A model generated the notes under the pieces. That model saw nothing but the letters and a program-made list of their open reading frames with translations, made no database searches and was not told where the DNA came from. Made by a program: the position numbers and the translations under genes. From Styela clava (taxonomy: Eukaryota): DNA of 64,000 bases. The stretch spans positions 19,840,001 through 19,904,000 of the forward strand of contig NC_135252.1 of the NCBI RefSeq assembly GCF_964204865.1. The letters are read 5' to 3'. Shown here piece by piece: positions 6,494-35,970 of this stretch (its first letter is position 1; each line of letters starts with the position of its first letter).

Positions 6494-8715
6494 TCAATTT
6501 TGCTGGTCTATTTGATCCATCGCCTCCAGAAAATCAAAAACATCCTCGTCTAAAAAGTATTGAATATTGTTAACTATATTATTCTGATTCTACCATAATA
6601 TATCAATTTTACTGAACTTTATGGATGAGAACATCTATTTCTAAATATATATTCTTCAATGACTTCCTTATTTTAGTCGCGCCAAGTTTATAGAAATCTA
6701 CGTAAAAAAATATAAAACAGATATTTCTGGACAGCGAGTAAAAGGGATAAATAAGACTAATGATTGTACTCTTCTATACGGACACAAAAGAGACAGCACA
6801 ATTGCATCCACGTACATTTACACCCGTAAACTGCATCAAGGAAATTTGAACCCGCATATATTTGCACCCACCGACATTTCCACCCATAGATTTTCACAGC
6901 CGCATATAGATTGCACCCGCGAAAATTTTCAACCATGTACATTTGCACCGATGTACATTTGCAATATGTAATTCGAAAAACATACTGAAATCTGAAATAT
7001 TTAACGACACTCAATTTGGAGCATGCTGCTCTAAAGTATTGGGGATGCTTCGGTCAAATGAGTTGTTTGATATCGCGTAAACTCACCGACACTTTCTCCC
7101 GTGTCTGCGCCATCTTGATCGGGGTATTGAATTTCCTCGTCATTTGTCGAACCCTGTATAAAATGTTCCTTTAGGGCAGGGGTGTGCAAACTGCGGCCCG
7201 CGGGCCAAATTCGGCCCGCAAGAAGAAGTTGTGCGGCCCGCGGAGAAATAATAATTTCGAATGGTGTACCCGCAAAGCCCATACCAGTCATATTAGCAAA
7301 ACAAGCTAACAAAATTCTGTTGCAAAATACACGATTCATATTACAAAAACGTGTTTCTCACTGCATTCGTTTGAAGTCGGTGTGACAAAAAATTAAAATA
7401 GCAGTTTCTTCAGAAGTTTATGCGTTTTAAATCTACTATTTCTGCAAGAACCCCTAATAATGCCGTAAGATCAATAGCAAATATAGGCAATTTTTGTGCT
7501 TGCAACTACCAGAAAGCCTAAATTAAATGAAGGTGCGGCCCGCGGCTTCACCCAGTTACTTGTATTTGGCCCGCCAATAAAAAAGGTTGCACACCCCTGC
7601 TTCAGGGTATTTGATGTAATATATTTTATTTTGTCTAAAAATTACGGATATGTCTATACAAGCAACAGATTGTATTATTAAATTTCAAAATGTATATCAA
7701 AGTTTCAATATTGGGATATTTTGACCGTATTTAGGTCAATTTGGAATGATTTAAAAAATTTGCAAATTATGTGGACGAAAGCTGTACTAACTTACAGTAG
7801 TGATGGCAATAATACCCCTAAACTAAAGATGTAGATGCAATATAGAAGGTTACATATCAAGTTTATAGTCATTTTTGAACAAATAAACATCGCATATTAA
7901 TCAGAGGCGTGTATGATTTTTTATGATAATCATTATTCAGTAAGTTAAGAATTTTGTCATAATTATATTGAATAATTGAAGCAATTTTCTTGGATATTTT
8001 AAAAAAATAATTTTTAGTGCTCATAATAGCTGTTTCAATGCCTTCTAATTGACTTCCTAGAAAGAAGAATACAAAAATGACCTTTTGACAATTATACAAT
8101 TTTCACAACTCACCTTGTTGATTATTTCTGGATCTATATATGGTCTCCGAGTCGGTCCAGGTCGCGGGCAACGTGTTTGAGGATATGGGGATCCACCGGG
8201 ACATAACCTTTCGTTATGAAAAAACTTAAATAAAATGTACTTCGAAGATGCAAATAAATTCTTCATTATGAATATCTATAATTATACCTAACTATATGTT
8301 TTTAGAAAACATCTTTGCTTAAATTTTTTATTGTGTTAAACAACCAAAGTAGTAGAGCAATTGGAAGCATACTTTTATGTGTCCAAGCCACATGATTCCT
8401 TCATATTACTTGTAGCCTATTATCGTGACAGTGTAAGTTTTATCACCACAAACAAAATGTCTACTGGATTGCGAAGTGTAAGGTATTTCAATAGGTTACT
8501 CACTTAGGAGGTATTGCCACTCTTCGCCGACTTCTTTTCACATGTTCAATAATTCTTTTGGTAGCCTTGACGATTCTTCTCACCAATTTCACTATTCGTG
8601 GTCTCCATGACACTTTTTTGCGTGTTTTGTCATTTTGCGTTTTCTTGACTGAACTATCAGAAAGTGATGCCATGACCATTGCCACAAGTAACAAACCGAA
8701 AAAGATAGACTTCAT
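6494..8715 (-). CDS. Antimicrobial-peptide-like prepropeptide gene A (142 aa): signal peptide, cationic helix, Pro/Cys module, anionic C-terminal propiece
   Basis: Exons 8715-8504, 8207-8114, 7153-7087, 6549-6494, all GT-AG, phases 2,0,1, frame continuous. Protein: MKSIFFGLLLVAMVMASLSDSSVKKTQNDKTRKKVSWRPRIVKLVRRIVKATKRIIEHVKRSRRRVAIPPKLCPGGSPYPQTRCPRPGPTRRPYIDPEIINKGSTNDEEIQYPDQDGADTGESVDEDVFDFLEAMDQIDQQN*. The ORF-track stop at 8500 lies inside the GTGAGT donor. Every exon has a counterpart in gene B. Confidence 0.85.
6798..6965. repeat. ACATTTGCACCC-type minisatellite in intron 3 of gene A
   Basis: About 10 degenerate 15-17-bp units, paralogous to 11335-11515. Confidence 0.8.
7177..7599. 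mobile_element. hAT-type MITE in intron 2 of gene A
   Basis: TIR CAGGGGTGTGCAA/TTGCACACCCCTG, 8-bp TSD CTTTAGGG/CTTCAGGG, GCGGCCCG subterminal motifs. Confidence 0.85.
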
Positions 8716-12150: not shown

Positions 12151-14049
12151 TTAATTTTGTTGGTCCATTTCATCCATCGCCTCCAAAAAATCGAAAACAT
12201 CTTCATCTGAAAAAATGGTAAATTTTGGTGCCAAGTTAGCAACGACTTTATCATTGTGATATAGATAAATTTATGAACATATTTATTTCGCAAAGAATTA
12301 TAAAACAAATATTTCTAAACAGCGAAAAAATCTACATTTTCTTGTCGACTAGCTCGGTAGCTGAATCATTTCGCATGAGCCAAATTTCGGATATTCTCTA
12401 GCTCGCAAAATCGTTCGGAAATAAAAAAAAAATTATGCAATATTCAAAGATCAAAGGACGCAAAATTTTGTCACATTTTGCTTAACCAAAAGGTAGGCTG
12501 GCAGCTATAAAGGCAGTGATGATTAGCAAAAGGCCCGTTAAACTCACCCTGACTCTCTGCCATGTCTGCGCCATTTTGATCGTTGTATTGAATTTCTTCG
12601 TCACCTCTCGAACCCTGTATAGTAATGTTGTATTTGGGGTTTCATGTGATATATCTTCTATCGTCTAATTAATGCGGATTTGGCTATATATGGTCAACAA
12701 ATCGTGTTTTTTATTTGAAAATGTGGATTTATGTTTAAATGTTAAAATCTACATATTTCCATCGATGTAAAGCAAATCATTGTATGCTACGTAGGTTATT
12801 GAAATCCATGTATTTGTATCAATTTCGAATAAATTAATATTTTTGTGATTAACATATAGTTTGCGCAAATAAAAAAAAAAGCTTGCAAAAGCGATTTCAG
12901 TTTTAAAGATGTATTGACATTATTACAATCAAACTAAAAAATCATATATATACAAAATTAGTGACACATTTTGTGGACATTTTTCAATTAAATATACAAA
13001 TCACACCGTAATCATAGGCTGCATATATGGCAATCACAATTCTGATAATCGTTCTTCGACGGATGAAAAATTGTGCTCTAATTATATTGAGCAATTGAAA
13101 TAATTTTTTGAGATGCTTTTAAAAACATTTAGAATAAAAATAAAATAACTTCTTGAATTAATAGGAGAAAAAAAAATTAGGTTGCTGTAATATTTGTTTC
13201 AAAAACAAATCAAATTACTTAATCTTAAATAAGCTATGGGAAACATACCGTGATACTTGGATATGGCTTCACGAACGGTGGAGGTGGACAACGTGTGTAA
13301 TGATATGGGTATCTGCCGGGAATGCATATCCTGTGAAAATGTCAAATAACTAAATTGAATAAAATTTATTTGTCATATATTTGGAAAATCATTTATATAT
13401 TTATGTTTTTTTTTATTAGATGGTATGCTAGGAACTGATATTTTGGGAAAGAGTATCCAGCTCGGCATTGTCTACCTAATTCAAACCTCGAGTGAGGCCG
13501 TGGGCATGGGTTTTGAACAAAGTCGTGTAACTTGCGATGCCAACAAGTGAAGTCTAACAATTTAGCCGCTTGGCCATCGCGCATAAAGAAAATAAATGAA
13601 ATTATTAAGATATGGAATCGCCCATTGTATAAAACAAGTTTTTTTTTTTTGTAAAATACCTGAAATATTGATTATATTTGAAAAGTTTCTTCGATAAATA
13701 AAAAGTTTGCGTTTCAAGTACTGCAATTTAAAGTGCGAATGCCACAGCGTTTATTCGTGGTAACTTGTAAGACATTATCAAAATTAGAGTTATCACAACA
13801 AACACTATTTGTATTGAACTACGAAGCGTAAATAGATAATAGATAATATAAAGGTCACCTAAAAGGTGTTCTCCGTCTATTTCTCCTGGCGTAATCAATC
13901 CCTCTTTTGGTTAGCTTAAAAACTCTCCACCACAATCGCCATGACAACTTTTTTGGTGCTTTGCCTCTTTGCGTTTTCTTGACTGAACTTTCAGAAAGTG
14001 ATGCCATGACCATCGCGACAAGTAACAAACCGAAAAAGATATACTTCAT
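12151..14049 (-). CDS. Antimicrobial-peptide-like prepropeptide gene B (131 aa), paralogue of gene A
   Basis: Exons 14049-13859, 13330-13249, 12614-12548, 12206-12151, GT-AG, phases 2,0,1. Protein: MKYIFFGLLLVAMVMASLSESSVKKTQRGKAPKKLSWRLWWRVFKLTKRGIDYARRNRRRTPFRICIPGRYPYHYTRCPPPPFVKPYPSITGSRGDEEIQYNDQNGADMAESQDEDVFDFLEAMDEMDQQN*. Exons 3 and 4 have the same lengths as in gene A (67 and 56 nt). Confidence 0.85.
13425..13582 (-). mobile_element. tRNA-derived SINE-like fragment in intron 1 of gene B
   Basis: A box TGGCCAAGCGG and degenerate B box GTTCAAAACC. Confidence 0.45.
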
Positions 14050-30662: not shown

Positions 30663-32799
30663 TCACTAGCCAGTTTGAGTAAATGTTTGTCCAGTTCTAG
30701 AAGTCTTGTGTTGTTAACGGTTTCGTAGATAAAAGAAAAATCATTTCACAATGTCATAATCTGCTGATATAGCATAGGTTGGAAATGTACTTTACAACCC
30801 ATGCATGTTGGCGAGGTTATGAACTTACACTTGTCTTGCACGAATATAGCTAGAATTCAGGGCAAGAACATCATGTTGCAAGGAACAAAAACAGTTCCCA
30901 AGTTCTTCTAATTGAACTATTGCAAATGCAAATGATTCAAGAATAGAGCCTGGTACATATTGCGGAAATATGTTAAAATACTGTTAATGTTAAAACAGGG
31001 GCAATATGTCACAAAGGATAAAACAGTAGACAAGTTTACCTATGATGATATACGTACTCGATTGCACTATTCGAGATTGTAACTACAAATAGAAGCATAT
31101 GATTCGGGAATATGGTAACCTCTACTAAATAACAAGCGTGATTAACGTTAATTTGCAATATTGTTGAATTCATTGGATTTAGTGATATTCCTGATGTGGA
31201 TTTTAAATATCATGAATTTTGTATTTCTGTCATCTCAACGAAGTGGCGAGGCGCTCACAGCCAGGATTGATCGCAATTTGTTCAGTTCCAATTAACATAT
31301 ACTACATTAGGCATACACATTGAAATTTGATTTCTTGAATTTGTTCTAATAAAACTCATGCCCACATATGGATTTGATTTAATGATAAAGCTCAAAGCTG
31401 ACAAATGATTGTAGTGAAACCATTCGAGGGAAATTTATTTAAACCGTTTTCTAAGCATTTAGTAATATAAACATTACTGCTATACTAAAACGAGAAAAAG
31501 AAGAATTTACAAGATGTATCAATCTTGACGCACGCTAACCAAATAAAACCCTCGCTTTGCCACGCGACTATTAACATCTTAAGATCGCTTGCTGATGGTG
31601 CCACGTTGGCCACATTAGGCGGCTCTAATTCATTTTCATAACAATAATATTTAAGAAAAACCTATAAGCTTTTCAGAAACAAAAATCTTTGGGAAAAGAA
31701 AATATTTATTCCGGGCAACGCCGAGGATATCCATCAGGTGGCGGCAAATCGCATTGGAGCATTGTTACTTCACAGTTTTATGCAAATGTCATTGTGTTTC
31801 CAAAAGTAACTCCAGGTAAATTATGATTACAACAATTCGTTCTGGGACACAATTATTTGTCGGGGCAATTATCCGCGGGTACGGATGTATGCAAGTGAAA
31901 ATGAGCGAGAGCGTCTTGTGGGCCGCGTGTTCGTCATTTAATGTGCTTAAACGATTATTACCAGCTGGAACTTCATTTCATCCAATATCTAATTGAAAGT
32001 TCATATTCCATAATTATATAGGTTTATTAGAGAGCACCTTACGTTCTGCACATTTGAATATGACTAATTAAATATACTATTTACTGCTACATACTTTCAT
32101 TTCATTTGAATACATATGCTAAACACAAAACATGGACCAAAATAGCAACAGGTAGCATATGTTTTGTGATAGGTACTGTGTATATATAACCGAGTCAAAA
32201 ACAAAACAAATCATTTCATTTGTTAACTCTTCTAATTGATACTAGAGACAATCAACAACAAAGTAAGTCTATTAATATACTACTGGGCAATGAGAATCAA
32301 ATTATTACTTGCTGCAATGGGTTCATTTATGTTTCCTAGGGTGGTATAGTTTACAATATTTGTATATAATTCAGTACAAATATTTTGGGGGGAATGTCAA
32401 TGAGATTTTTGCTTGCATGTATGTGTTTTTAATATGTATACTTGGTACTCTCGTAGTGTATGTACCAGATTGTGGTTAGTCCATAATTTCATTCCGATTT
32501 TCCTTATTTTAGTTCTATTACGAGTTCGTGGACTGTATGTGTTAGCTAAGTGAATATAGTTACCTCCATATTGGTTCATATACTGGAGTGCAGTATATTC
32601 TGCAGCATGTGTACATATCTTCAGTACTTAATAGGAGTCTGATGTAAAAAAAGCGAAGAACGACTTCTGTAATTTTCTGTGTTTAAATTGATATGTTTTT
32701 TGTTTTTCATAAAGTTAGCTCATAGTTTTTTGTACATAATAAATTTTTACTTTGTTCTTATATATTAACATTTATACTTTTTATGCTCAGTTTAAAACC

Positions 32800-34427
32800 A
32801 TGAACTCGAAGGTTATTGTTTTCATCGCACTGGTGGCAATGCTTGCTGTCGATAACACCCAAGGGTGGAAGTGGTGGAAAAAGGCGGTGAAAACAGCCAA
32901 AAAAATTTGGAACCATCCGTGAGTTCTCATATTTAACTTTATGAAAACACAAGAAACAATCACATGAATTAAATTTCACTTGGAAAGTTGATTTATTTTT
33001 AAAAATCAACGTAAAACGTATCCTTTCATTCCAATTCCGAATCTATATATTTTCTTTTATTTCATACATGGGTGGCAATTTATGAATATTACTTGACAAT
33101 AAAAAAAAAAACTTTATTTCGAATATATTCTACTCTTAAGTCTACCACAATAAGGTACATAGAAAGTTATAAGCCATATATTTTTTTCAGTGTCACCAAA
33201 GGAATAAGAAAAGCGTTTAAAAATTGGGATGCAATTACAGCATTGAGAGAGATGGTAAAAAATTAATAAATTCTCAGACAAATAATGTATCGTATGGATA
33301 TTATTACGCGTGTTTGAGTAATTTACATTTGTAGATAGTGTACAACTACCTATATCTATACTATCTATATAACTATCTATAAATGTTTTTTTTAAACTAG
33401 AAATGCTAAAATATATGGACACACAGACCAAAGCGAAGTAGTATCAAATATTCTACAGTCGCAGTAGTCTGATCACCGTATTGTTGAGTTACCACACAAA
33501 ACTTCAAAATGAAAAACGAGTCTCTTAGAACCCCAAAAAAATTTGAAATAAGTATAAGTAATAGCCTTTCAACGACAATCTTAAACCACTAAAAAAATTC
33601 AAATCAATTGGTTCAGTAAATGAAGATGAAGTTTTTTTTTTCCACAATGGCAGTATCAGCAAGATGGAAAAGAAAAACACTAACAACATAATAACAAAAC
33701 TAATGATATGTTTACTTCGTTTTCAACAATTCCCAGTTTATACCTTTTTGAAAAAAAGAAGAAAGTATTTGCCGTAGCCGAATATTTATTATGTATTTCT
33801 TGTATTATTCTTCCAACATTCAATACACCGTACTCCAAATTCACTTTGGCAATATTTCCATTTCAGAACGACTATGAGTACGAGAGCATAATGGAAAAAG
33901 TGAGAGACGATCTTGAAGATGATTATACCGAGAATGAACTTGATGAGCTTTTTGATGCCGTCAACCGAATCAGAGGATTGAGTGAAGGTAAATTCTATAT
34001 ATAATTGGTCGAATATCTCACGTCATCTATTATTAAACAGGCGGATAAACTGCAGACTGACATACTTCCAGGTCTTACTTTAGTCTTACTGAGAAGTTCT
34101 CAGATAATTCTTGATGGTGCATGATTTGTTAAATAGAACTAATTTCGCTCCGAGCTAATGTTTATTAATCCTACGCTGTTTTGTCGCACTTTTGACTGTG
34201 CTCATGAAATATATCATTACATATCCCTTATATCATTGAGCAAAAAATTGATAGCAAGGCACAGTTTACTAAACCTGTGAAGTAAAACAAAAATTCTGAC
34301 TAACTATCTTCTAATTGCAGACAATTTCATGGCTCTCAAGCTGATGACCGATGGAGTTGATTTTAACGATCAAGTTGACGCAAGCGATGTTGCCAAGGCT
34401 TTCGCCCGCAGTTTGTTGAGCCAGTAG
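32800..34427 (+). CDS. Styelin/clavanin-type antimicrobial prepropeptide gene E (136 aa) with Trp/Lys-rich amphipathic region and long acidic propiece
   Basis: Exons 32800-32918, 33191-33254, 33867-33987, 34321-34427, GT-AG, phases 2,0,1. Protein: MNSKVIVFIALVAMLAVDNTQG-WKWWKKAVKTAKKIWNHPVTKGIRKAFKNWDAITALREMNDYEYESIMEKVRDDLEDDYTENELDELFDAVNRIRGLSEDNFMALKLMTDGVDFNDQVDASDVAKAFARSLLSQ*. Also TATA near 32181, a non-coding first exon with GTAAGT donor near 32263, acceptor at 32790 and AATAAA near 34489. Confidence 0.88.
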
Positions 34428-34578
34428 TTCTTTGACAAAAATGTTGACACAGTTAATGTGTTAAAGTGTTCTTTCTTTAATGAATTTAAATAAAGATTGC
34501 ATGAACTAAATTATTTTGTGTTTCATGTTACAATAGAATTAGCAAAAAGTGCCAGTTATCGAAATAGGGAGTAATATA

Positions 34579-34749
34579 TAGGGTGTACAATGGGAATTTA
34601 TCGATACCATATATTGTTTTTTCCCGCACCGATGTAAATGAAGTAAGAATACTTTAACTGATTAAAAAACAACAAACCTGGTTGAAATATATTGAGAACT
34701 GACTTCGTACCAAAATTGAAATTGTAAAGGGACTTTATGAACACCCTGT
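34579..34749. mobile_element. Possible mariner-type MITE
   Basis: Degenerate TIR TAGGGTGTAC / GAACACCCTG flanked by TA. Confidence 0.4.
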
Positions 34750-35970
34750 ATATGCGTACTACATATATGAACATGGAATAAATAGAAGCAATAAAACGCA
34801 CCATATATTAAATGCGATTAAATATAGATAGCCCTTTCTTGGTCGTTGCTCGATGAACAAAATTATACATTACGGATGTGGAAATTTTCCGAGTAATTTT
34901 GTACGATTAGGTGAAAGTAGAATCCGCCAATATATGTTTATGTTCGATTTATTTCACAATTAATACATAACCAAGTGACAAATTTGTGAAAAAGTCTTTT
35001 TTAATTTAAACACTGATACTTTAAGTTTGCTCTGTTTAATGAATACTTCTTCCGGACCTCCTGAAGTATGCACACTAAGATGGCGCACAACCTGAAGTCA
35101 GGTTATCATGTTAATTAGAATTAAAACTTTAACGAAATCCAAAGCGGCAAACTGTTGGGTTACCTATTTTTATATATACCTGCTGTGTATGGATCATTTG
35201 TGTAATGGAAAAAAAGAAAGAAAGGATAATGGGAGCAATTTTTACTATCATATGAGCGGGTCGGCATAGGCAAAAATTTGATGCTTACTCTTTTTGTTTG
35301 GCGCTCGATGAACAAAAACTAAGAAAAATGGAGAAAGATTAATTTGCAATTTTCAACTACTATTTATTGTAATATAATACAAAAAAGCCATAATTAAAAT
35401 TGGTTAATGGTGCTATATTCATGTTAAAGCACTCAAATCGTTGACTCTTCAGCTTTGGATGTTCGACCATCATAAAAAATCAAATCATGTTGAATGCCAA
35501 TTTAGTATTTTTGTGTTATTCAGAAACAATTTTTGTATCAGATTCAAAAGTAAAATCCCACAACGCGAATAAATATTACTTACATTCATGTCGATAGCTG
35601 ACAATAGGAATAATTTGTAGCGAATGTTTGTTGCCAGACTTATTCATAGTAAAAAATGCGCAGCTGGTAAGAAGCAAACTATTGTGTATGCATGACATGT
35701 ATAAGTCTGGCAACAATAACTAAAGTTTTATTCTTTTTTTTATCATTGCATTGCATCAAAGCAACAAAATTCAGTAATAGATTATTTTAATAAAATTTTT
35801 CCTGATTTTAGGACTTCACGATAAGATTTCATAATCACCTAATACTTAGATCCAAGTTGTCAATAAAAAAATTCAAACAGTTACGTCTCACGAGAACGAA
35901 GAATATTCATTGCACGATTTTCTTCTTTGTTATTTAAGAACTTTATATCATGAAATTACTTGTTATCAAC

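Follow-up and report, generated by a model that had tools for sequence, protein, structure and literature searches.

Results

Gene structure at the locus

The window analyzed here is a 64,000-nt stretch of the Styela clava genome (contig NC_135252.1, positions 19,840,001 to 19,904,000), and its positions 32800-34427 contain a gene model of four exons (Table 1). The coding parts add up to 411 nt, or 136 codons plus the stop, with intron phases 2-0-1, and all three introns run from GT to AG with pyrimidine tracts. After the signal peptide, which ends in QG, exon 1 continues with WKWWKKAVKTAKKIWNH and closes on a Pro codon that intron 1 splits between CC and T; the first helix comprises 17 aa with four Trp and six Lys, and the phase-2 donor is GTGAGT. 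Exon 2 supplies the last base of the Pro codon, a second cationic helix, VTKGIRKAFKNW, and the motif W-D-x-I-x-x-L-R-x-M, whose last residue directly abuts the phase-0 donor GTAAAA. Exon 3 is a 40-aa acidic propiece module with 15 Asp/Glu; its last base opens an Asp codon that intron 3 splits, and its phase-1 donor is GTAAAT. Exon 4 encodes a mildly acidic tail of 34 aa before the TAG.

Searches of the exons or the region against Pfam, NCBIfam, PDB sequences and Rfam returned nothing meaningful, and no competing ORF or RNA family was found at the locus. Dispersed repeats lie within intron 2, at about 33381-33451, 33523-33593 and 33665-33735. An arrangement of pyrimidine tract and AG like the one listed here upstream of the ATG is also seen in styelin genes.

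Table 1. Features of the gene at 32800-34427 (positions in the window)
Feature	Position	Strand	Description
TATA-like TATATATT	32759..32766	+	34-41 nt 5′ of ATG; candidate core promoter, weak, by eye
Pyrimidine-rich tract ending AG	32777..32790	+	directly 5′ of ATG; candidate trans-splice or 5′-UTR-intron acceptor
Exon 1	32800-32918	+	119 nt
Signal peptide part of exon 1	32800..32865	+	22 codons, M...NTQG
Rest of exon 1	32866..32918	+	first amphipathic Trp/Lys-rich helix and CC of the hinge Pro codon
Intron 1	32919..33190	+	272 nt, GT...AG, phase 2
Exon 2	33191-33254	+	64 nt
Intron 2	33255..33866	+	612 nt, phase 0
Exon 3	33867-33987	+	121 nt
Intron 3	33988..34320	+	333 nt, phase 1, codon split between G and AC
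Exon 4	34321-34427	+	107 nt including TAG
AATAAA	34489..34494	+	62 nt 3′ of stop codon; likely polyadenylation signal

Predicted prepropeptide

By the -3/-1 rule, the signal peptide is predicted to be cleaved after its Gly; a cut before that Gly, leaving a GW N-terminus of styelin type, is conceivable. The initial annotation had described a mature N-terminus of helix-Pro-helix layout with five Trp, and the exon translations bear this out (four Trp plus one). The cationic segment holds 10 Lys/Arg and no Asp/Glu, a net charge of +10, and its Pro hinge lies on the exon 1/2 junction. Both halves are strongly amphipathic: the helical moments of the first and the second (0.67 and 0.81) were reached by only 3 and 7 of 5000 shuffles, respectively. 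An acidic region of ~75 aa had also been proposed: it measures 75 aa when counted from the start of exon 3 (40, the split Asp and 34), with 21 Asp/Glu versus 7 Lys/Arg, and 84 aa when the Asp that follows the last Trp is taken as its start. As the product has neither a Gly amidation signal nor a dibasic site, its processing is a guess.

AlphaFold2, run on the closest annotated paralogue (P0002) with five relatives, gave a mean pLDDT of 53 and a pTM of 0.43. The model was read only as an all-helical chain with a break at the Pro.

The Trp adjoining the signal cleavage site is invariant across the long-tailed family described below. It corresponds to the brominated Trp-2 of styelin D. As excerpted, the review PMC8659048 lists position 2 as the only brominated one. 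The styelin D-like and E-like genes of this genome encode a second Trp. Styelin D itself has a second Trp, which is not known to be brominated. Multiple Trp bromination of the present peptide, for which the initial annotation had made it a candidate, is speculation.

A dispersed family of long-tailed styelin-like genes

The exons were compared by hhalign with a family profile built from six RefSeq paralogues, the present gene left out (LOC120339621, LOC120339730, LOC120335939, LOC120335937, LOC120327039 and LOC120327047). Exon 1 matched at a probability of 97.7 % (E 1.6e-12, 38 columns), exon 2 at E 7.3e-4 and exon 3 at E 1.1e-7, and the three matches are collinear (profile positions 2-45, 59-73 and 75-113). 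With exons 1 and 3 matching in this order at these values, the array lies beyond chance. A genome search with exon 1 found the first exons of paralogues at E 5.9e-7 and 1.1e-6. With about 15 other members, on contigs C10, C2 and C4 and elsewhere on C3 (3.6 Mb from the present gene), the family is dispersed, and 16 exons of the exon-3 type, including the one described here, occur in the genome at E < 1e-7. RefSeq names the relatives uncharacterized proteins; version 1 of LOC120335939 carried the NCBI name 'styelin-C-like'. At the level of literature listings, no description of the long-tailed family was found.

Paralogues on C10, C2 and C4 have four exons and the same phases, and their splice models are confirmed by RefSeq proteins P0001, P0002 and P0005. 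The split Pro or exon 1/2 junction falls at the same place in the present gene and in L002, L011 and L004, and the position and phase of intron 1 are common to the paralogues and the canonical styelin genes. Exon 2 of the present gene reads WDAITALREM and then GT; the motif recurs in L002, L003 and L012, and L011 has a variant with Lys for Met. In an eight-member alignment, exon 3 aligns without gaps to five of the seven other sequences. Exon 4 has no relatives in the genome beyond its self match and gives E 0.73 against the family by hhalign; since tails differ among paralogue pairs too, it is a weak family criterion. A search with exon 1 of the C4 paralogue L006 returned no candidates.

Two paralogue pairs illustrate the range of likeness. 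LOC120339621 and LOC120339730 (P0002/P0012 and P0013; C10 at 9.04 Mb) share the four exons and 2-0-1 phases, a signal ending in TQG followed by Trp, the Pro codon split by intron 1, the W-D-x-I-x-x-L-R-x-M motif closing exon 2 and a 40-aa acidic exon 3. Their identity to the present gene is 44-48 % in exon 1, about 47 % in exon 2 and only 23-25 % in exon 3; they differ in lying on another contig, in an unrelated exon 4 and in having fewer Trp than the five found here. LOC120335939 and LOC120335937 (P0001 and P0014; C2) have the same plan and phases, an exon 1 that likewise ends in HP, and the best match to exon 3 (33-35 % identity). In contrast, their exon 1 is 28 % identical and their second helix is Ala/Gly-rich and far less cationic.

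Relation to styelins

The styelin genes C, D and E (PF17562; P0016-P0018) lie at 16.31-16.34 Mb of C10. A 16-residue string from the styelin E-like locus had no match in full-text literature, and it is for this reason that these three loci (L050, L052 and L054) are identified by the named RefSeq proteins P0016-P0018 together with the precursor plan (PMC8659048). In hhalign, the long-tailed family profile matched the styelin C/D-like precursors at 98.3 % (E 1.2e-14, 77 columns), and the family is thus, on profile comparison, homologous to canonical styelins. Compared directly with styelins, the present gene shows weak similarity (E 3.2e-4 for exon 1, 0.099 for exon 2 and 0.023 for exon 3), and none of its four exons, searched one by one, matched PF17562 at E up to 10. 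Against a gathering cut-off of 27 bits for that model, P0002 scores 15.4 bits and the styelins 134 bits.

Comparison of exon structures, which the initial annotation had called for, gave a divided answer: introns 1 and 2 have the same place and phase in the styelin genes, whereas intron 3 differs (L050 and L052 are 2-0-0). Styelins C, D and E share with the present gene a 22-residue signal and a cationic helical peptide with Trp at its beginning. In both, intron 1 is in phase 2 inside the mature peptide after about 16-17 residues, and intron 2 follows in phase 0, in styelins directly after a conserved Met (...G-D-M) that has its counterpart here. The start of the acidic propiece, D-x-E-[FY]-x-x-[FI]-M, is common as well. 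Intron 3 follows a 19-aa exon in phase 0 in the styelin genes and a 40-aa exon in phase 1 here. The styelin-type plan can be summarized as a cationic exon closed by a phase-2 intron, a second module closed in phase 0, an acidic exon closed in phase 1 or 0, and a tail.

As excerpted from PMC8659048, styelin precursors are 80-81 aa long, with a 22-aa signal, a 31-32-aa peptide, a Gly amidation signal and a 26-aa propiece. The present product differs in its 136 aa, its 75-84-aa tail and an Arg in place of the Gly; its peptide lacks the KHK motif and is Trp/Lys-rich, whereas styelins are Phe/Tyr-rich. Two further proposals found no backing. That exon 3 arose by doubling of the 19-aa styelin module was rejected, as its two halves, taken from the exon-3 alignment and compared by hhalign, gave E 0.17. 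A styelin-type gene 48 kb beyond the window was not supported as kin, the best E values being 0.36 and 1.9 among 232 ORF pieces.

Genes A and B of the window

The initial annotation had linked the gene to two others in the window, A and B, on the strength of an identical four-exon plan. The phases 2-0-1 are indeed shared (exon lengths of 212/94/67 for A and 191/82/67 for B), the distance of ~19 kb holds (the ATG of gene B at 14049 is 18.75 kb from the ATG at 32800), and the reported lack of obvious similarity agrees with hhalign, in which exon 1 of A and B reached a probability of 1.3-1.8 % against the family. Genes A and B, both on the minus strand, are conserved with each other in exons 1, 3 and 4. 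Their exon 2 is Cys-looped and Pro/Tyr-rich, whereas that of the present gene lacks any Cys, Pro or Tyr-rich stretch. Against the family exon-3 profile, the last exons of B and A gave E values of 1 and 6.3 in a set of 4005 ORF pieces from the window. The proposal of an old AMP cluster derived from one ancestral gene plan is not supported: no sequence similarity to A or B was detected, and the relatives with the same plan lie elsewhere. Given demonstrable relatives on other contigs and 3.6 Mb away, 2-0-1 is the plan of a dispersed family and not a mark of the neighborhood.

Annotation, expression and constraint

Neither a profile scan of 1.84 billion representative proteins nor a word-plus-profile search of 5.8 billion clusters recovered the product. 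Each of them did return RefSeq paralogues, the collections holding eight products of six paralogous genes, so that NCBI seems to have annotated no gene model at this locus. A 13-residue string of the peptide had no match in full-text literature. In all three mapped runs guessed to be RNA, out of seven listed, read depth was zero on all four exons. In a DNA run of another sample, the exonic SNPs were synonymous in three of three cases (chance about 0.008), and SNP density was 1.6 % in the exons versus 3.2 % outside. The open frame and the SNP pattern are signs of constraint.

Discussion

We conclude that the locus probably holds an intact, so far unannotated four-exon Styela clava gene of the long-tailed styelin-like family. 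The part of the initial annotation that called it an AMP-type prepropeptide gene related to styelins, with a cationic helix-Pro-helix part and an acidic propiece, is upheld, as is the sharing of 2-0-1 phases with A and B.

The antimicrobial action of styelins and botryllin has been tested, and both are produced as prepropeptides that include an acidic propiece (PMC8659048 and PMC9966394, as excerpted). Botryllin of Botryllus schlosseri is a styelin-like prepropeptide of 158 aa with a 23-aa signal and a 37-aa cationic mature peptide; it is made by morula cells, and the synthetic peptide kills bacteria and yeast (PMC9966394, as excerpted). By this description its prepropeptide, like the present one, far exceeds styelins in length. 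Reviews call styelins cecropin-like (PMC10608444). The exons described here had no match to cecropins (PF00272) among Pfam results at E up to 10. In insect cecropins a Trp lies close to the N-terminus and two helices, the first of them amphipathic, are joined by a Gly/Pro hinge; the apparent likeness to them is one of design only.

We hypothesize that the 136-aa prepropeptide would enter the secretory pathway by way of its 22-residue signal. The cationic part, of 30 aa by the limits of the initial annotation or about 36 aa with the end point of styelins, would carry a net charge of +9 to +10 and five Trp in two amphipathic helices joined at the Pro hinge. The C-terminal propiece, acidic with a net charge of about -14 to -15, may keep it harmless in storage, presumably in hemocyte granules, until proteolysis near the W-D-x-I-x-x-L-R-x-M junction releases the peptide, which might then act on microbial membranes like styelins and botryllin. 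The analysis shows the gene structure, the open frame, membership of the family, the homology of that family to styelins and signs of constraint; that the product is expressed, in which cells, where it is cut, how it is modified and how it acts are inferences.

Other readings of the locus differ in what they put in question. That the exons are a chance array of open pieces and no gene draws on nothing but the lack of RNA reads, and the collinear profile matches of three exons, the family-typical intron positions and the clear field of competing ORFs and RNA families make it exceedingly improbable. A silent or near-silent family copy, its promoter activity lost or confined to rare conditions and its frame intact because the loss is recent, would explain both the zero exon depth and the missing protein model where six paralogous genes have products in the collections. 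We regard it as rather unlikely. Such a copy would be old, since even the nearest paralogue is distant (46-48 % identical in exon 1, 23-35 % in exon 3), and an old unselected copy in a region of 31 % G+C would be expected to carry a broken frame or splice site; the synonymous exonic SNPs also speak against it. The RNA runs, moreover, are small and of unspecified tissue, and hemocyte peptides can drop out of embryo or whole-body libraries. A secreted peptide of the same plan might instead serve as a cytotoxic or allorecognition effector of morula-type cells, as a phenoloxidase substrate or as a signaling peptide. The function of the long-tailed members is so far putative, and styelins are also hemolytic and cytotoxic and may be phenoloxidase substrates (discussion of PMC9966394, as excerpted). 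Nevertheless, a high net charge combined with amphipathicity and a high Trp content is typical of host-defense peptides that act on membranes, and the tested homologues are antimicrobial, so that we give this role little credence.

Shared ancestry with A and B, as a local and very old cluster that keeps only its exon plan, is a reading we consider unlikely. All three genes split the same Asp codon between G and AC at intron 3 and have identical phases, and the last exons of B and A rank second and sixth of the 4005 ORF pieces against the exon-3 profile. Those scores are not significant, however, and an acidic composition is enough by itself to raise pieces of this kind; in exon 1, the likeness of A and B stops at the signal's hydrophobic core, the motif lies in exon 4 of A and B versus exon 3 here, the two genes are on the opposite strand, and demonstrable relatives on three other contigs have the same exon plan. 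On a wider and distinctly speculative view, for which we see only a slim chance, the styelin-type exon plan would be the remnant of a very old, very large sea-squirt defense superfamily including A and B, diverged beyond recognition, within which the present gene would encode a conditionally expressed, multiply brominated Trp-rich peptide. If true, that member could help to show how the Trp halogenase is guided to the residues it modifies.

As a member of the long-tailed family, the gene would leave our knowledge of how such peptides work unchanged. The candidate peptide, with five Trp and a charge of +10, lends itself readily to synthesis and to a hunt for bromo-Trp by mass spectrometry. The gene at 32800-34427 brings a Trp-rich, apparently unannotated member to the long-tailed styelin relatives, which number about sixteen, and from the exon structure of the styelin genes it is seen that styelins and this family have their first two introns in common.

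Gene structure and predicted product

The initial annotation described a four-exon gene with a Trp/Lys-rich N-terminus of the WKWWKK type, five Trp residues, and an acidic tail, and our exon reading and translation bear this out. The exons sum to 411 nt, and their lengths give intron phases of 2, 0, and 1. All introns are of the GT...AG type with a pyrimidine tract ahead of the AG, and an AATAAA lies 62 nt 3′ of the TAG.

Exons of the focal gene (window coordinates)
Feature	Position	Strand	Length	Read from
Exon 1	32800-32918	+	119 nt	sequence of 32500-34800 and translations
Exon 2	33191-33254	+	64 nt	sequence and translation
Exon 3	33867-33987	+	121 nt	sequence and translation
Exon 4	34321-34427	+	107 nt, ends TAG	sequence and translation

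The product of exon 1 starts with a hydrophobic leader of 22 residues (ending ...NTQG), followed by a 17-residue Trp/Lys-rich piece; intron 1 splits a Pro codon (CC/T). The exon 2 product is a 12-residue cationic piece with a terminal Trp, followed by DAITALREM. Exon 3 encodes 40 residues, 15 of them Asp or Glu, and is separated by a split Asp codon (G/AC) from the 34 mildly acidic residues of exon 4. The cationic part contains 10 Lys/Arg and 5 Trp but no acidic residues, and the helical hydrophobic moments of its two halves were matched by 3 and 7 of 5000 same-residue shuffles. The focal region contains no sensible competing ORF of at least 50 aa and no Rfam family. For the paralogue nearest to the focal gene among those annotated, a low-confidence AlphaFold2 model (mean pLDDT 53) shows helix throughout, interrupted at the Pro.

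A pyrimidine tract ending in AG (window 32777-32790) lies 7-10 nt ahead of the ATG, as it does in three styelin genes (L050, L052, and L054, just before position 1501), and could be a spliced-leader or 5′-UTR-intron acceptor.

The focal gene belongs to a long-tailed styelin-like family

The focal exons were compared one by one, as separate peptides. In the genome, exon 1 matched two paralogous exons on C10 at 9.04 Mb (E 5.9e-7 and 1.1e-6) and, more weakly, sites on C10 at 8.85 Mb and on C4; exon 3 as a single sequence gave weak matches only, and exon 4 matched itself alone. Using tblastn of the exons against paralogue loci, we found collinear matches to exons 1, 2, and 3 in L002, L003, L011, and L012. 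In the paralogues, intron 1 again interrupts a Pro codon, as CC/N (KYP, RHP, or TSP, compared to NHP in the focal gene), exon 2 ends in ...W-D-x-I-x-x-L-R-x-M at a phase-0 donor (splice sites read in these four loci), and the third exon encodes 40 acidic aa and ends in phase 1.

A profile built from eight exon-3 peptides gave 21 genomic matches at E up to 1 (24 candidates scored). Sixteen had E < 1e-7: two each on C2, C10, and C4, nine in an array at C3:16.19-16.24 Mb, and the focal gene itself. The same profile was also run against 1.84 billion representative proteins, where 8 hits had an E of 0.001 or lower. Five of these come from Styela clava and belong to the family (P0001, P0002, P0004, P0005, and P0006); the others are P0008, a longer repetitive acidic protein, and P0003 (602 aa) and P0007 (755 aa), in which the profile matched 9 and 6 stretches, respectively. 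By exact look-up, the five family members correspond to RefSeq entries for "uncharacterized protein," version 1 of one being named "styelin-C-like," and the RefSeq family sequences agree with the splice models read from the paralogue loci.

A further profile was built from six full-length paralogues, without the focal gene. On it, exon 1 aligned to columns 2-45 (E 1.6e-12), exon 2 to columns 59-73 (E 7.3e-4), and exon 3 to columns 75-113 (E 1.1e-7), and exon 4 had no match. Because exons 1-3 match this profile, the predicted family membership of the focal gene is well founded; its tail exon, judged from these searches, is unique. The focal product is absent from both protein collections, and paralogues are present in both. 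When the exon peptides were searched as separate rows, 8 of 1884 candidates passed, all paralogues, and a full-length focal product would have qualified. The gene is therefore seemingly unannotated and, on sequence evidence, is an additional member of the long-tailed family. A full-text search did not find the focal peptide in published papers. Among the paper listings and abstracts searched, and in passages of PMC9966394, PMC10817596, PMC10608444, and PMC8659048, we found no account of the Styela clava genome that describes such an extended family of styelin-like genes.

We note several features of the paralogues. The neighboring loci L002/L003 (C10:9.04 Mb; P0002 and P0013) are 88% identical overall, with differences concentrated in the second cationic helix (exon 2) and the signal and propiece nearly unchanged, which is the usual pattern for fast-evolving mature peptides. 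At C4:7.12 Mb, P0005 (L005) keeps the styelin-type ...A-G-D-M followed by six extra residues ahead of intron 2, and P0015 has ...L-W-D-M at that site; intron 3 of L005 seems to start with GC in place of GT. In the Arg-rich array, L008 and L009 (C3:16.19-16.22 Mb) appear to lack an exon-2 equivalent and would have three exons, as the phase-2 end of exon 1 fits the frame of the acidic exon directly. Unlike these two, L010 (C3:16223431-16223535) has no acceptor AG before the acidic exon and may be a damaged copy.

Relation to canonical styelins

A profile of ten exon-1 peptides, all of which share Met-1 and the Trp that follows the signal, gave 53 genomic matches with E of 1 or less (82 candidates scored). 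Three of these, at C10:16.31-16.34 Mb (E 4e-6 to 2e-5), lie in open frames that read as styelin precursors, and a search with one such frame returned three candidates, named styelin-D-like, styelin-C-like, and styelin-C. These proteins (80-81 aa) carry Pfam PF17562 (134 bits) and fit the precursor plan of 22 + 31/32 + Gly + 26 residues set out in PMC8659048. The canonical genes L050, L052, and L054 form a small cluster at this site, each with four exons and phases 2-0-0; the L050 product is a styelin E-like peptide that is not among the three named proteins.

Styelin exon 1 ends in phase 2, 16 residues into the mature peptide, and exon 2 ends in phase 0 directly 3′ of ...G-D-M. Exon 3 encodes 19 aa (T-D-E-E-F-Q-x-F-M...) and ends in phase 0, and the last exon encodes five residues. 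In the comparison of exon structures suggested in the initial annotation, introns 1 and 2 of this 2-0-0 structure correspond to those of the focal gene in place and phase, and intron 3 does not.

Compared profile to profile, the three styelins and six long-tailed proteins match with a probability of 98.3% (E 1.2e-14); the alignment is collinear over 77 columns, starting in the signal and reaching into the propiece. In all three styelin loci, the true exon 3 is the top ORF piece against the exon-3 profile (E 0.0022, 0.0023, and 0.033 among 605 pieces; next best 2.3). Compared directly, the focal gene and the styelins show weak similarity (exon 1, E 3.2e-4; exon 2, 0.099; exon 3, 0.023), single focal exons had no hit to Pfam Styelin, and the paralogues score 10.7-15.4 bits, below its cut-off of 27. 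The focal gene is a relative of the styelins and not a styelin.

Comparison with genes A and B

The focal gene had also been placed in a cluster derived from one ancestral plan with genes A and B, two AMP-like genes on the minus strand of the same window. Gene A has exons of 212, 94, and 67 nt and a last exon ending at 6494; gene B has exons of 191, 82, and 67 nt and a last exon. These lengths place both at 2-0-1, and both share the split codon G/AC at intron 3, with conserved blocks corresponding to exons 1, 3, and 4. The claim of an exon plan common to all three genes is therefore correct, as is the separation of about 19 kb (ATG at 14049 versus 32800).

Sequence kinship is another matter. 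Exon 1 of A and B matched the long-tailed family profiles with probabilities of 1.3 and 1.8%, with the hydrophobic core of the signal alone aligned. Their last exons ranked 2nd and 6th of 4005 window ORF pieces against the exon-3 profile but with E of 1 and 6.3, a ranking that may be explained by acidic composition. In these searches, A and B are not detectable kin of the focal gene. They may share a common origin with it, but the exon plan is the sole argument for this, and demonstrable relatives elsewhere have the same plan. What stands of the initial interpretation is a styelin relative with a shared plan, without detectable kinship to A and B.

GC-rich GCGGGCCGC-type repeats occur on the minus strand in intron 2 of gene A (window ~7190-7270 and 7540-7590), the nearer block ending ~40 nt upstream of conserved exon 3; their appearance suggests pieces of a foldback element that has inserted there. 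At 48 kb beyond the window, L063 (C3:19951000-19954500) is a gene with a signal and an acidic last exon that gave no significant match to the exon-1 and exon-3 profiles.

Expression, constraint, and repeats

Four of 11 sequencing runs contain the focal stretch, and the seven runs guessed to be RNA contain next to none of its words. We mapped three of these seven and one run that contains the stretch; contigs of the latter continue across the introns, so it behaves as DNA. Exons 1-4 have zero depth in all three mapped RNA-guessed runs, although the same runs do cover repeats in intron 2 and at 34588-34700.

The DNA run has 19 SNPs in the 677-base left part of the stretch, at half the density in exons compared to outside. 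Three are exonic, and all are third-position synonymous; as 19.8% of possible changes are synonymous, the probability that all three would be so is ~0.008. The copy is old, yet it has kept an intact frame and six of six splice signals in DNA of ~31% G+C. The intact old frame and the synonymous SNPs argue for a working gene, and the zero RNA depth and absent product argue against one.

Within intron 2, depth is raised in the DNA run at window 33381-33451, 33523-33593, and 33665-33735, in some cases also in RNA-guessed runs; these stretches are repeat fragments and not exon signal. Directly downstream of the gene, 34588-34700 is a very high-copy dispersed repeat, with summed contig depth ranging from the thousands into the tens of thousands in each of the four mapped runs and many loose contig ends at 34588, 34620, and 34657.

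Predicted maturation and action

The predicted mature N-terminus is Trp by the -3/-1 rule, or Gly-Trp if the precursor is cut as in styelins. The C-terminus is uncertain. The 30-mer of the initial annotation stops at the conserved Trp. In styelin D-/E-like genes, however, the mature peptide includes the equivalent stretch (W-x-I-G-x-H-[AV]-[LV], then G-D-M), and by this correspondence the focal peptide would end at ...TAL, with 36 residues and Arg replacing the amidation Gly.

The first Trp, invariant in the family, is the counterpart of position 2 in styelin D, where a 6-bromo-Trp occurs. Multiple Trp bromination, which had been suggested, is possible but unsupported, because position 2 alone is listed as a brominated Trp of styelin D in a passage of the review PMC8659048.

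By homology with styelins and botryllin (PMC8659048 and PMC9966394), the signal would be removed from the focal precursor and the acidic tail would neutralize the cationic helices in storage. A protease would then free the cationic peptide, which would disrupt microbial membranes. We hypothesize that storage, release, and membrane disruption of this kind probably apply to the focal product.
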